64,000 nucleotides of DNA from Macrostomum lignano (GCA_002269645.1 NIVC01000570.1:310001-374000), one strand, 5' to 3'. Shown: positions 2,887 to 51,458, counted from the first letter of the stretch. The notes: generated by a model not told the origin, from the sequence alone. Program-made: numbers and translations.

Positions 2887-3069
2887 CTAACCATGAAAAT
2901 GAACGTGGAAGCCCTTCTTCCTCAGCTTCGGGAACTGCTCCTCTGACATCTTGGAATCGTCGGAGTCGGACGGATCCTCCTTCGACTCGCTTTCGGCCTT
3001 GGCCTCTGAGGGTTCGACAACGACCAGGGCTGCGAAAACCAGAAGTCCGAGAACCAGTTGCCACTTCAT
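2887..3069 (-). CDS. Secreted His-rich peptide precursor, copy 1 (C-terminus RKKGFHVHFHG)
   Basis: 60-aa ORF: hydrophobic signal MKWQLVLGLLVFAALVVV, acidic spacer, basic RKK site, terminal Gly; near-identical paralogs elsewhere in the window. Confidence 0.85.
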   Translation of the reverse strand: MKWQLVLGLLVFAALVVVEPSEAKAESESKEDPSDSDDSKMSEEQFPKLRKKGFHVHFHG

Positions 3070-4016
3070 GATTGCTTGAGTCGAGTCGATTCTTCGAGCT
3101 GTGTGTAGATTGAGTCGAGTCTGAGCTTGTTGCTCTGAGCAGTCGGCAGCTACGAATTTATACGCATCGGATCAGCACGTGTTTCCGGTCCGTTGAGAGG
3201 CGTTGTTTGAGTTGAAGACTTTCGCATGAGCAGAGACAGGCGTTGTTTCAAACGAATATCATGTAGCGTATATTTGCTTGCTGACACCCGAGCAATCAAA
3301 CGAGTACCGCTCTAGCTTTTTCTCAGTGCAAATTTATCTAACGCACGGCACTGCACTGCAGTCACTTGACTCAGTCGCATATTGAAGCCCAATGACGCTA
3401 TCTATCGACTGTGGAGAATAAATGCATGAAATCGAGATATCTACAGATTTTTTGGCTACTGTGTGTTGATTTCTGCAGTTTCTAATGGTAGTTCTGATTT
3501 GTCAGAGCACGCTCGTGTTCAGAATTTCTTTGATTTTATTCCTTATTCGGTCAAGTACGCGGATTTCAGTCGCCGATTTCGTGTGATTGAGCGATGCGGA
3601 GAAACCAGACGCATGTCCAGAAATGCATGGAAGCGTGCAATATGCCAGCTTATATTCTGACTTCGCCTTGTTCTGTCTACCGTTTTGCGGCAACTGCCGA
3701 CTTTCCGCGTTTCCTTTGACACTCGCTTTGAACGTGACTGGATATTTTTTAATCATTTCAACTCCACTAAGCTCTCATTACAGGATTATTTGAATGGGGT
3801 TTAACAGTAGAAAGACCATGGGGGTGTTTTTCAAAAACACACATTTTCCTTTGTCTGGATCTCCCAAAACTTTTCAAACAATTGCCATGAAAATCCAGAA
3901 CACGGGCTAAAATTTTCCGCTCTATGCGATGAAGCAACTTCGAGAATCACGAAAAATCGGCATCGTCTAGATATTCAACAAAAACCACCAACATTGAGAA
4001 ACATTTTCAACATTGA

Positions 4017-4290
4017 GAAAAAAAATCTACTACTACTACAACTACTACTACTACTGCTACTACTACTACTACTACTACTACTACTACTACTACTACTACT
4101 ACTACTACTACTACTACTACTACTACTACTACTACTACTACTACTACTACTACTACTACTACTACTACTACTACTACTACTACTACCACTACTACTACTA
4201 CTACTACTACTAATACTACTACTACTACTACTACTACTACTACTACTTCTACTACTACTACTACTACAACTACTACTACTACTACTACTA
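4017..4290. repeat. (CTA)n microsatellite
   Basis: Long ctactacta run producing poly-L/Y/S/V ORFs. Confidence 0.98.
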
Positions 4291-4568
4291 TTCGATCCGT
4301 TGGACATCACTGTACATCGCGTCATGTTCATTGACGATGTTCGACCATAGCTGTTCGATCCCAAGTCTGACGCCATGGTGAGTAAATTAGTACATATATA
4401 GATTGTTGATAATAAATTATACAAATTAATGTAAATTATCAATATTGTTGATACTGATGTACATGAATGTGTCTTGTTCATCAGGTTCCGCTCCTACGGT
4501 TGATCGCTGGGGACACCTTCAATGTCAACCAGAGGTATCAATCGATAGTGAGTCACCATCTGCGAGAC
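4289..4568 (+). pseudogene. Partial duplicate of the SF3 helicase gene (Walker B region, intron, start of exon 2)
   Basis: Near-identical to 9519-9790, including the GT-AG intron; carries an extra nonsense change (gag to tag). Confidence 0.85.
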
Positions 4569-4572
4569 TGAA

Positions 4573-5264
4573 AAACCAACTGACAGATGTATATTAATTA
4601 GTAAGCCGAGAAGGATCACAATGTTTTATATGTTGCTTCTGCCATTTTTAAATCGTTTGTACATATATATTATTTATTTATGCGATTATACTTTGCTCAT
4701 GGTTTGTACATATTAATGGATCCATAGTTGGTTGGCTGACTTTGTTTCAAAGCGGTCGATTCATTGTGTTGTTAAATAATCGTGTGTAAAGTGCATGCCG
4801 TTACCGTTCTGCATACGTTATAAAATTTGTTTGTATAAATATTTAAGTGGTTTATTGACCAAGATTCCGTTGCTGGTTGTTGACGCCAAAACTGTGTCCG
4901 AGTCATGCACATACAATTTCAGATGGGTCAAGATTTTAATCATGGCCGGTTGTTGTCAAACTTGTCCTCGTAGATGCCAAATGTGTGGATTATAATTGTC
5001 AATGTTGCTGTGCTAGTGACTGTAATAAAAACTGTTAACATTGTGTATGTATATATGTATGTATGTATGTATGCGTCTGTTTGTCAAAGCTGTGCTCAAT
5101 TGAGACAAATCTGTGTGCATGACTAATAACCGATATAACAGAAAAAATAAAAAAATCAAACCAGCATACGAACAATGGATAATAAATGTCAATAAGCTGA
5201 TTAAAATCTTCGTTTAATTATAATATAGTTTCAATAAACATATAGTTACAAAGGTGAGCAATTC
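4573..5264 (+). repeat. ~690-bp direct repeat, copy 1 (segment A)
   Basis: Runs aaaccaactgacagatgt...aaaggtgagcaattc; matches 12242-13755 once the solo LTR is removed. Confidence 0.9.
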
Positions 5265-48638: not shown

Positions 48639-49395
48639 GCAACATCGTAAATCGAAATCGCTTCAAGAATCGGAAGATTACGACAACTCACAGCTGACCG
48701 GACTTTGATCTCTGACTCGGAACCACCCAATTCTGAATGGTAAACTTGAAATCTACTCGGCTCTTATTCGCTGATCAGTTTTATTATCTGACAAATACAA
48801 CAGCATCGTTTAATTAGGCACCCAGTACAACGATAAGATTTTTGTTGTTAAGCTGCGTAAATTTCTTTGTAAGTCGGAAGTCATAATGGGGAGAAATTTT
48901 AAATACATTTAATTTTAATTAATGATCTTAAAATATGACAGCAAAAATAGCTGTTTCGAAGGAGCGACTTTTCCAAAGGCGGCTGCTGCTCGCAAAGACT
49001 GGCCGCTTGTCCACCCGGCCTGAATTTCCCCAAATTGACCTGCGTTCTACAGGTTCGCATGTTTCATAGTGTGCTGGTGGGTGGCTTGTAAAAGTAGCTG
49101 CTCTTAAATTAAGAGTAGTTTCGGAGTCAAATTGTGGTGGATGAGACCTATATGCGCGTCAATATGGTCAGCCAATGTCGTTTTTTCTGTGCCTTGTTGC
49201 ACTGTACCGATATTTTCACCCGCATACAATAGAAGCATTTACTGCTCGTTATTCCAAATATTAAAATAGAAATTTGGATTCAAAACATTCAGCACCAGGT
49301 GTATTTGTTAATACGAACTTAGCTAAAGAACACCAAAAAGTAAATGAACAAAAAAGAAACAATCAATAAAAACTTAACTACACTCTTAACTAACT

Positions 49396-49510
49396 CTATC
49401 TATCTATCTATCTATCTATCTATCTATCTATCTATCTATCTATCTATCTATCTATCTATCTATCTATCTATCTATCTATCTATCTATCTATCTATCTATC
49501 TATCTATCTA
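49396..49510. repeat. (TATC)n microsatellite
   Basis: Direct reading. Confidence 0.97.
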
Positions 49511-49987
49511 TGTATATATAGGCATAAAGATACAGCAGATAGATATATACTTTTCTATCTGAGTTCTCAGCTGAGTTTCGAGTGCCTAGAGTTAATTTTT
49601 GCACTAGACAATTGGGCAAATGAATTTTGATACAGAGTTCCGTCAGCCTCAATAAAGTGACTTCAATATACGATTTGTCATGAAAGCGACTAAAAAGTAT
49701 CTGAATGAAGATGCATTTACAAGTCCTTTACTTCACGGCTCGCAACTTGAAGATATTTACAAAGCCCAACAAAACAAACAGTATAGTTTCTTTGCGAGCC
49801 TATTTATTTGGTACTTGTTGGTATATTTAATAAAACTCGCCAGTGAATAAACACTGAGTACACTACACCTCAACCATTTAGAAATTGGGGGGGGGGGGTT
49901 AGAGTCAGAGTTCAGAGTCCGGTCGGTGGGAGTTGTGAGTGCGAGTCCCTTAATCTTCGATAAAGCGACTTCGATGTACGATTTTGT

Positions 49988-50178
49988 TTATTTACCAGGT
50001 AAATGAAAGTGGAACTTCTTCTTGAGCTTCGGGAACTGCTCATCCGGCTTCCCGGAAGCGTCCATCTCGGAGGATCATCCTTCGACTCACGTTCGCCCTT
50101 GTCGTCCTCCTCCTGGGAAGGCTCGGCGACGGTCAGGGCTGCGAACAGCAGAAGTCCGAGGGCGAGCTGCCACTTTAT
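49988..50178 (-). pseudogene. His-rich peptide precursor, copy 7 (pseudogene; would end KKKFHFHLPGK)
   Basis: Start codon ATG changed to ATA (50176-50178); 191 nt versus 192 nt in copy 6, i.e. a 1-bp deletion in the spacer. Confidence 0.8.
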
Positions 50179-51275
50179 GTTCGCTTGAGTCGAGTCAAGC
50201 CTGAGCTTGTTGTTTGTCTCTTTATTTTTCATAAAAGCCAAATGACGCTATCGATCGACTGTGGAGAAAAAATGCGCGAAATCGGGATATCTAAAGTACA
50301 GACTGTTGCACCATGGCCATCACCATGAATTCTCACTTTCAGACAACCCTCCATTAGTAAAGTTTATTTAGTCCCTTTGTAGCTTAGCCAGATCCCTCAG
50401 AGGTAAGTGAGATGATTTGGTCTACGATATGGTTTGGTACTCGTATATCCAGATTATGTCCACCTCGCAGCACCCCAACAAGTTTACACGCTACAATGAG
50501 TTCATGACTGTTTAGCACAAATTTGTTCTATTTAATCCAATGGTGAAAGCCCAGTGGTGTCGCAATTATTTAAAAGTGATCTGAAAGATTAAGTTCTGAC
50601 AGGTTGGTGTCGGAAAACGGTGGCAAGTCGGCAGTTGTCGCTCTTAGAGTTGGTAGATGGAACGAGGCGATGTAAGAATATAAGCTGCAAATGGCGCGCT
50701 ACCACGCATTTACCGCGCATTACCACGCACTACCACGCATTACCACGCATTTTCTGGTTCTTCCGCATTTTCTGCCGGGTCGAGTAAGGAATCAAATCTA
50801 AGAAATTGTAAATAGCATCTGACAAGTTGAGATCTTCAATTGGAAACTGCACTAATCGACAACAAGTCGCCGAGTCAACGATCTGTACAAATTCTGATTT
50901 CGCGAATTTCTTCTCTACAGTTGATAGATAGTGTCAGTTGCATTTACTATGCTAATGATGTGGAGTAAATACAGTGCAGTGTAGAGCGGTGCATAGGATA
51001 CATTCTCACTGAGAACACGCTAAAGCGGTACTCGTTTGATTGCTAGGGTGTCAACAAGCAAATATACGCTTCATGGTATTCGTTCAAAGCAACGCCTGTC
51101 TTTGAGGTAAAGAAAGCCTTTACCTCAAACATCGTCGCTAGACGGACCGGAAACACGTGCCGATCCGATGCGTATAAATTCGAGGCTGCCGACTGCACAA
51201 TACAACAAGCTCAGACTCGACTCAGTCTACGCACAGCTCGAAGAATCAAAGCAACTCGACTCGACTCAAGCAATC

Positions 51276-51458
51276 ATGAAGTGGCAACTGGTTCTCGGAC
51301 TTCTATTGTTCGCAGCTCTGGCCGTCGCCCAGCCCTCGGAGGCCAAAGCCGAAAGTGAGTCGAAGGAGGATCCGTCCGACTCGGACGATTCCAAGTTGTC
51401 GGAGGAGCAGTTCCCGAAGCTGAGGAAGAAGGGCTTCCACGTTCATTTTCATGGTTAG
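51276..51458 (+). CDS. His-rich peptide precursor, copy 8
   Basis: ATG at 51276; 60 aa, ends RKKGFHVHFHG. Confidence 0.85.
   Translation: MKWQLVLGLLLFAALAVAQPSEAKAESESKEDPSDSDDSKLSEEQFPKLRKKGFHVHFHG

Follow-up and report, generated by a model that had tools for sequence, protein, structure and literature searches.

Secreted prepropeptides of host-defense-type organization in the flatworm Macrostomum lignano, with an unusual ultrashort His-alternating branch

Introduction

The described systems closest to the one reported here are the preprodermaseptin-type precursors of amphibians (dermaseptins, temporins, tryptophyllins), in which a signal peptide, an acidic spacer, a basic pair and a variable short peptide follow in the same order as in the flatworm genes in question, which also form multigene families, and in which Gly or Gly-Lys amidation ends are frequent, temporins, for example, also ending in GK. 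The flatworm genes are found in a stretch of 64,000 nucleotides (nt) of the Macrostomum lignano genome (GCA_002269645.1, NIVC01000570.1:310001-374000; the whole of this stretch is referred to as the window), and they encode small secreted precursors predicted to release tiny peptides in which His alternates with hydrophobic residues. In contrast to the amphibian precursors, with which they share no homology, the flatworm ones have KK and not KR at the predicted cleavage site and are encoded by intronless genes, and their peptides are shorter and of an alternating, beta-strand character, while the amphibian ones are helical.

Cathelicidins and defensin propeptides likewise join a conserved pro-region to a variable cationic end, with a propiece scaled to the charge of that end, as in the flatworm family (rho -0.79, see below), and one flatworm paralogue, FLRVRLPRVRMPRVRLPRVRLPRLRVRFRW, is similar in composition to the Pro/Arg-rich cathelicidin peptides. 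However, the flatworm precursors possess neither a cathelin nor a defensin fold, nor homology to either, and their propiece is far smaller. The designed beta-sheet antimicrobial peptides (AMPs), such as (IRIK)2-NH2 and (hydrophobic-Arg)n-NH2, follow the same design as the predicted flatworm products IFRVRVRI-NH2, FVRVRVRL-NH2 and WLRVRARVRI-NH2, but the former are synthetic and the latter genome-encoded, the window products having His for Arg or Lys. As to peptides switched by pH or metals through His, histatin 5, the clavanins and the piscidins (with FFH or FIH N-termini) present the nearest examples, and GFHVHFH and its paralogue FIHIHF would share with these the amino-terminal copper- and nickel-binding (ATCUN) pattern. 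Clavanins are listed as His-rich (PMC12466427). All three kinds of peptide, i.e., histatin 5, clavanins and piscidins, however, are of 20-40 residues and contain Lys or Arg, while those of the window are of 6-7 residues and contain neither. Finally, by analogy, FIHIHF-NH2 and GFHVHFH-NH2 would stand near the catalytic amyloid heptapeptides (Ac-IHIHIQI-NH2) in apolar/His alternation and in the predicted amide, while differing in that the N-terminus of Ac-IHIHIQI-NH2 is acetylated and theirs is predicted to be free, and in that their pattern comes from Arg-type relatives. Such comparisons with AMP, amyloid and ATCUN peptides are leads, not tests. By its organization, we rate the flatworm family as one of AMP-type prepropeptides, one branch of which is unusual for its ultrashort, His-alternating products.

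Gene copies in the window

A six-frame search of the window finds seven intact intronless open reading frames (ORFs) and one dead copy, with a ninth copy in addition that is cut off by the window edge, and the ORFs are the same as those listed by an earlier reading made from the nucleotide sequence alone (the sequence-only reading), which had counted seven intact genes and one pseudogene with these peptide ends. The copies, in which the intact precursors of 60 or 63 amino acids (aa) are the six-frame ORFs, are the following:

2887-3069 (-): 60-aa precursor gene ending in KK-GFHVHFHG and stop; repeat unit ~2803-3549
39436-39618 (+): 60-aa precursor gene ending in KK-GFHVHFHG and stop; repeat unit ~38896-39850
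41279-41461 (-): 60-aa precursor gene ending in KK-GFHVHFHG and stop; unit ~41029-41714; inverted repeat I1, 92%
43485-43667 (+): 60-aa precursor gene ending in KK-GFHVHFHG and stop; unit ~43222-43921
46080-46262 (-): 60-aa precursor gene ending in KK-GFHVHFHG and stop; unit ~45815-46530; inverted repeat I3, 96%
48447-48638 (+): 63-aa precursor gene ending in KK-FHLHLPGK and stop; unit ~48161-48868
49988-50178 (-): FH-type pseudogene, would-be end KKK-FHFHLPGK and stop; homologous stretch ~49755-50216
51276-51458 (+): 60-aa precursor gene ending in KK-GFHVHFHG and stop; unit ~50726-51690
63875-64000 (-): ninth copy, cut off by the window edge, its 3'-untranslated-region-like end matching unit positions 570-696 with 79% identity

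The six 60-aa ORFs conform to the consensus MKWQLVLGLL[VL][LF]AAL[VA]V[VA][EQ]PSEAKAESESKEDPSDSDDSK[LM]SEEQFPKLRKKGFHVHFHG, followed by the stop, and the 63-aa ORF at 48447-48638 (+) ends in ...EQFPKLRKKFHLHLPGK and stop. The architecture proposed by the sequence-only reading, of a signal peptide, an acidic spacer, a basic site and a short C-terminal peptide, is what is seen in the window, and it is shared across the wider family described below. The pseudogene at 49988-50178 (-) has its start codon changed from ATG to ATA and carries a 1-nt deletion in the propiece that shifts the frame, and its homology with the intact copies ends ~36 nt upstream of the old ATG. Within 38.9-51.7 kilobases (kb), the copies form three convergent pairs (39436+/41279-, 43485+/46080- and 48447+/49988-), the first two of which recur at a spacing of 4.0-4.8 kb. 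The cluster extends past the window on the same scaffold, with more copies found 31-51 kb after the window end (locus L002), and an Arg-type relative is located ~97 kb before the window start, also on this scaffold. Three long microsatellites are present in the window, (CTAT)n at 158-483, (CTA)n at 4027-4290 and (TCTA)n at 49395-49519, the last of these in the interval that separates the FHLHLP gene from its pseudogene partner.

Gene unit, promoter and transcription

Each copy is part of a repeat unit of 0.5-0.95 kb, the units being 75-92% identical to one another, and their alignment resolves, in this order, a conserved upstream block, a promoter module, a conserved 5'-untranslated region (5'UTR; ...ACTCGACTCAAGCAATC-ATG), an uninterrupted coding sequence and a conserved 3'UTR of ~230 nt. 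The promoter module, of 29 nt, reads AACACGTGCCGATCCGATG-nnn-ATA(A/T)ATT and combines a CACGTG E-box-like element with a TATA box. It is found seven times in the window, once per intact gene, with 0 occurrences expected by chance:

3155-3183 (-): module (CACGTG and TATAAAT) of the 2887-3069 gene, 1 mismatch
39322-39350 (+): module AACACGTGCCGATCCGATG-nnn-ATAAATT of the 39436 gene, 0 mismatches, ending 86 nt before the ATG
41546-41574: module of the 41279-41461 gene
43371-43399: module of the 43485-43667 gene
46349-46377: module of the 46080-46262 gene
48362-48390: module of the 48447-48638 gene
51152-51180: module of the 51276-51458 gene

No module is found at the pseudogene, since the homology of the latter ends short of that position. 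With the shared repeat units and with seven modules against an expectation of none, the likeness of the window copies is far beyond chance.

As to transcription, the GenBank annotation of the Mlig_3_7 assembly derives solely from a genome-guided RNA sequencing (RNA-seq) transcriptome (PMC5730564), and such transcript-derived gene models coincide with four of the window copies: 2887 (-), 39436 (+), 48447 (+) and 51276 (+). At the first of these, database protein P0010 (77 aa, from a transcript-derived model) is an exact match and maps to 2890-3120 (-); at the second, an annotated 81-aa gene model spans 39373-39618; at the third, where there is also a gene model, database protein P0006 maps to 48423-48635; and at the fourth, the 60-aa database protein P0007 maps to 51276-51455. 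As the annotation comes from RNA-seq only and four window copies bear such models, the peptide family is transcribed, while the near identity of the copies keeps the individual loci from being told apart in the transcript evidence.

A larger family with Arg-type members

A profile made from the window proteins and their close relatives was searched against 1.84 billion representative proteins, followed by a second profile search and by inspection of the genomic loci around the matches, and at least 42 distinct precursors were recovered in this way, all from M. lignano except one, encoded on a Logan contig of the run SRR31628392. Among 5.8 billion proteins, the relatives are M. lignano hypothetical proteins only, and the Pfam matches are all below threshold. 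The family has so far been found in M. lignano only, and its absence elsewhere may merely mirror database content.

Common to the family are the signal peptide MKWQ[LI][AV]LGLLLCAALAVA, the acidic propiece and, in nearly all members, the KK site. It is the C-terminal peptide that differs. Some members end in long Arg-rich peptides of 18-33 residues with a charge of +6 to +14 (WRIRFRRIRIRWRRVYRVVRTAYRIYRHLPFP-GK, FLRVRLPRVRMPRVRLPRVRLPRLRVRFRWSKK, WRRRRRFRWRKAIRVAGKVAKAVL and FRIRIRWGRVARNVLRLL-GK); others in short (hydrophobic-Arg)n peptides of 8-10 residues (IFRVRVRI-G, FVRVRVRL-G, FVRLRVRI-G, WLRVRARVRI-G, FIRARVRVRL-G); others in mixed Arg/His peptides (IFRVHVRF-G, FVRVHVRF-G, IFRVRVHI-G, IFRVRARIHI-G); and still others in pure His peptides (GFHVHFH-G, FHLHLP-GK, FIHIHF-G). 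No other branch of the family is as amplified as the His branch, which has 24 distinct annotated products on four scaffolds. One example of how these types intermix is the locus at NIVC01000619.1:6075-26344 (L006), in which Arg-type, mixed and FIHIHF genes (IFRVRVRI, FVRLRVRI, IFRVRVHI, FIHIHF and WLRVRARVRV-GSRRRSRSG) are interleaved within 16 kb. These genes share the promoter core and the 5'UTR with the window genes, the module thus being kept in Arg-type paralogues. GFHVHFH can be aligned position by position with IFRVRVR(I), and the Arg and His codons are one transition apart, CGC versus CAC in the genes L006_4110 and L006_10076, and CGT versus CAT elsewhere.

The window genes are thus a His-substituted branch of a larger family with Arg-type members, and do not form a family of their own around a metal-binding heptapeptide. 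The His heptapeptide as a stand-alone invention was considered and rejected, as the profile search placed it in the larger family. The hydrophobic/His alternation is therefore an inherited amphipathic beta-strand pattern in which Arg has been swapped for His, the other members having (hydrophobic-Arg)n or long Arg-rich peptides.

A few further observations concern single members. The gene on the Logan contig (929 nt; L003), at 541-813, encodes the Pro/Arg-rich 33-mer FLRVRLPRVRMPRVRLPRVRLPRLRVRFRWSKK and has a diverged yet recognizable promoter (ATAAATA); the contig may come from a further species of Macrostomum or from a locus of M. lignano left unassembled. Proteins P0037 (BOX15_Mlig001477g4) and P0046 (BOX15_Mlig004661g1) show an internal duplication of a pre-pro or propiece segment, which is either true or the product of gene models that read through tandem copies. 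A further profile match, P0029, a chickpea protein of 2503 aa, showed no matched stretch and was judged spurious.

Processing signals

By inspection, the signal peptide has MK as its n-region and a hydrophobic core ~16 residues long, with small residues at positions -3 and -1 (AVA|Q or SEA|K). In table S5 of Irvine et al. (2023; PMC10414684), paralogues with an almost identical signal have a 'Y' flag next after the protein length, and we take this flag to mean a predicted signal peptide. In every His-branch copy compared at the codon level, KK is invariant, and the residue preceding it is R, E or K. It also precedes the peptide in most of the family, while two long paralogues have EK instead. 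The tribasic RKK site of the sequence-only reading does not hold up, because paralogues on other scaffolds have EKK or KKK, and the conserved motif is KK. A C-terminal G or GK, the signal of an amide donor, is found in 37 of the 42 distinct precursors, and between the two His types the stop is displaced by a 1-nt indel (GGT TAG versus GGT AAA TAA), with the amidation signal kept in both. With these two features conserved, comparison of the precursors gives good support to the predicted release of the peptide at the basic site and to its predicted C-terminal amidation. In flatworms, PC2-dependent processing is on record, with amidated peptides verified by mass spectrometry (PMC2953531). The computed monoisotopic masses of the predicted products are 878.430 for GFHVHFH-NH2 and 761.434 for FHLHLP-NH2.

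Conservation, charge and selection

Averaged over the pairs of 22 representatives, identity falls from 0.85 in the signal peptide to 0.55 in the propiece and 0.34 in the mature peptide, and only within the GFHVHFH sub-branch is the mature peptide the best conserved part. A conserved signal with a variable mature peptide is the pattern of the frog-skin peptide, cathelicidin and conotoxin families and the reverse of that of neuropeptide families. The negative charge of the propiece tracks the positive charge of the mature peptide (Spearman rho -0.79 over 22 distinct peptides, uncorrected for shared ancestry). The Arg-type paralogue peptides have charges of +2 to +14 and a beta-strand hydrophobic moment (at 180 degrees) of 1.0-1.45, while the window peptides, which are without Lys or Arg, have a computed charge of ~+0.5 at pH 8.1 and of +2.7 to +3.6 at pH 5.5.

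The GFHVHFH genes fall into two clades whose flanks, signal and propiece are 80-90% identical (proportion of synonymous differences, pS, 0.21-0.29; ratio of non-synonymous to synonymous proportions, pN/pS, 0.24-0.40). The 27 nt that encode GFHVHFHG and the stop are identical in all 18 of 18 inter-clade pairs, with ~2.8 differences expected, a result that is suggestive of, but not decisive for, constraint on the mature codons. The mature region shows three non-synonymous substitutions and no synonymous ones between the G and FH types. Two chimeric copies, at 4978-5160 (-) of locus L001 and at 2991-3173 (-) of locus L002, combine a GFHVHFH-type propiece with an FHLHLPGK end, and these show that gene conversion or recombination between the two His subfamilies clearly occurs.

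A host-defense-type design

On balance, we find it probable, if by no wide measure, that the window carries tandem, TATA-driven, intronless genes of a secreted prepropeptide family with the precursor design of host defense. The organization found is that of such families: a conserved signal and an anionic propiece, a variable C-terminal peptide, and multigene clusters. Some of the long members have already been scored as AMP-like. In the S5 file of Irvine et al. (2023, PLoS Pathogens; PMC10414684), the last column of which we take as the percentage of 11 AMP predictors that score a peptide as positive, BOX15_Mlig024774g1/g2 (group 142) stand at 100 and Mlig001477g4 (ungrouped 544) at 82, and these are long family paralogues recovered by our profile search. 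Mlig026130g1-3 (group 71) stand at 91 in the same file (PMC10414684); these have an MKWQLA start and, by eye, the same build, and they are not among the profile-search matches. Irvine et al. dropped these candidates as single-genome or ungrouped, and peptides shorter than 10 aa were excluded (PMC10414684), which left both the 8-mers and the His branch outside that evaluation.

The claim of the sequence-only reading that this is not a described family stands in part. The GFHVHFH, FHLHLP and Arg-type strings were not found in the searchable literature, a search that the flatworm neuropeptide catalogues (PubMed 19361512, 27388856) lay outside of; ten Mlig gene identifiers of the family had no match in the paper texts searched; and neither identifiers nor sequences are present in the M. 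lignano supplements on genes differentially expressed in aneuploidy, on the intestine, on germline and neoblasts, on aging, or in those of a prostate in situ hybridization screen. However, as the long paralogues are listed as AMP-like in the S5 file (PMC10414684), the wider family has not gone wholly unnoticed: the family as such appears undescribed, with some of its long members sitting among the discarded predictions of a supplementary table.

As to how such a system would operate, we infer that the signal peptide (MKWQLVLGLL...A) would route the precursor of 60-63 aa into the secretory pathway and then be cleaved off, and that the acidic propiece would neutralize or mask the C-terminal peptide and keep it soluble during transport. 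A subtilisin-like proprotein convertase would cut after the conserved Lys-Lys, a carboxypeptidase would trim the basic residues (Lys), and peptidylglycine alpha-amidating enzymes would turn the terminal Gly into an amide, to give GFHVHFH-NH2 from six genes and FHLHLP-NH2 from one. Nearly uncharged at the pH of seawater and cationic, at ~+3 to +4, below pH 6, the His peptides may be switched on by pH or by metal, a proposal that follows from the computed charges given above, and they may bind Zn, Cu or Ni through their His face and, in the case of GFH, also through an ATCUN-type N-terminus.

Several points weigh against a host-defense role. The Pfam matches of the family stem from the signal peptide and all fall short of the curated cut-offs (a weak match to Defensin_propep, with an E-value of 0.17, is one of these), with no homology to a known AMP family, and the literature and supplement searches found no expression site, peptide detection or activity for any member. 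At 6-7 residues and without Lys or Arg, the window peptides are shorter and less cationic than a typical AMP, and for this reason the His peptides and their Arg-rich paralogues may differ in role. As sites for convertases, KR and RR are more common than KK. The charge correlation is uncorrected for shared ancestry. The signal of constraint on the mature codons is no more than suggestive, selection tests having little power over a mature peptide of only 8 codons, and the copies do undergo gene conversion, as the chimeras show.

A more specific version of the host-defense reading, for which we would claim only a small likelihood, is that the His peptides come from Arg-type antimicrobial ancestors, lose their charge in seawater and self-assemble with Zn or Cu into a metal-loaded, amyloid-like beta-sheet material with antimicrobial, redox or catalytic properties.

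Alternative readings

One alternative, which we consider unlikely, is that the genes encode a neuropeptide or peptide hormone, i.e., prohormones of neurons or endocrine cells whose amidated products act on receptors or on peptide-gated channels. A signal peptide with a dibasic site and a C-terminal Gly is the classic prohormone signature, the predicted amidated products of 6-10 residues are of the size of flatworm neuropeptides, and flatworms do have PC2-dependent amidated peptides (PMC2953531). The conservation profile, however, is the reverse of that of neuropeptide families, with the signal best conserved and the mature peptide least (0.85 versus 0.34); the paralogue peptides of 18-33 residues and +6 to +14 are unlike neuropeptides; there is one peptide per precursor but dozens of tandem gene copies; and the charge of the propiece compensates that of the peptide.

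Equally improbable in our view, though compatible with defense, is a high-dosage, metal-binding, self-assembling material, through ATCUN binding of Cu or Ni or through a Zn-bridged, amyloid-like state, that would serve in mucus, in adhesive, in the eggshell or in hardening, or would offer a catalytic surface. The strict hydrophobic/His alternation of GFHVHFH, FHLHLP and the paralogue FIHIHF fits such a role, as does the amplification of the His branch beyond any other of the family, and the peptides, having a charge near zero at pH 8.1, would tend to aggregate in seawater once released. With regard to the Xaa-Xaa-His motif, which the sequence-only reading had pointed out for GFH, GFHVHFH of the six genes and the paralogue FIHIHF agree with it by the sequence rule, provided that a cut after KK frees the amine of GFH and FIH, but FHLHLP, with His at position 2 and none at position 3, does not. 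The alternation, moreover, is inherited from Arg-type paralogues, and was thus not built for metal binding, and the likeness to designed peptides is one of analogy.

Also of low probability is a rapidly evolving secreted peptide that acts between animals, such as a seminal-fluid or other reproductive peptide, a pheromone, or a toxin or repellent used against predators or prey. Many reproductive and toxin gene families are, like the present one, lineage-restricted, tandemly amplified and highly variable, and among the prostate transcripts of M. lignano are many novel secreted ones (PMC5977470). Still, the family sequences are absent from the text supplements of the prostate in situ hybridization screen, no link of the family to the tail or to reproductive organs was found, and Arg-rich amphipathic peptides are more typical of membrane-active defense.

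Finally, that these are non-functional repeats, with ORFs still open through recent duplication or gene conversion and with transcripts that are noise, is very improbable: the copies are 86-92% identical, gene conversion is evident and selection statistics on 8 codons are weak, but seven of the eight copies keep the ORF, promoter module, KK and Gly while the dead copy lost several of these at once, the architecture is kept in at least 42 diverged paralogues on many scaffolds, pN/pS in the signal and propiece is 0.24-0.40 between the G-type clades, and the gene models are RNA-seq-derived.

Other elements of the window

Between the first gene copy and the others, the window contains a Maverick/Polinton-like transposon of ~15 kb (14251-29191), flanked by inverted arrays of 82-nt repeats (14251-14644 and 28875-29191), in which the following ORFs are recognized:

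15937-17223 (-): double-jelly-roll capsid domain ORF
19093-19881 (+): A32-like packaging ATPase ORF
21240-21713 (-): adenovirus-type protease ORF
23424-25514 (-): large polymerase-like ORF, its sole Pfam match a sub-threshold one to Endonuclease VII
26256-27287 (-): rve integrase ORF

A 21-nt satellite, with ~38 copies in each of two arrays in opposite orientation (11232-12051 and 35896-36685), brackets ~24 kb that include this element, and two other satellites are located at 10473-11049 (45/90 nt) and 31252-32011 (23 nt). At 33763-35554 there is a GC-rich (57%) fragment of a non-LTR (long terminal repeat) retrotransposon with an endonuclease/exonuclease/phosphatase domain, and the ORF at 54784-56115, which contains a retroviral-type aspartyl protease (gag-protease), probably belongs to an LTR retrotransposon fragment. 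An uninterrupted ORF of 867 aa at 58836-61439 (-) has no Pfam match and may be transposase-like or an orphan gene. A tRNA scan of the window found none.

Implications

The family would supply M. lignano, a transgenic model, with a large, lineage-specific repertoire of defense-type peptides. The natural (hydrophobic-Arg)n amides of 8-10 residues that it is predicted to yield are near the minimal designed antimicrobials, and the graded natural series from Arg to His provides, ready-made, a structure-activity experiment on switching by pH and by metals. As the His branch is the most amplified, the His peptides are probably abundant, and easily detected by mass spectrometry, and the compact promoter, of ~300 base pairs, could serve as a cell-type-specific driver. 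If the metal-assembled version of the host-defense reading were true, GFHVHFH-NH2, FHLHLP-NH2 and FIHIHF-NH2 would be a natural counterpart of the designed catalytic amyloids, and a previously undescribed flatworm defense family would have in them its most amplified effector. Even without a role in defense, the family presents a clear case of a conserved pre-pro region that bears very different products.

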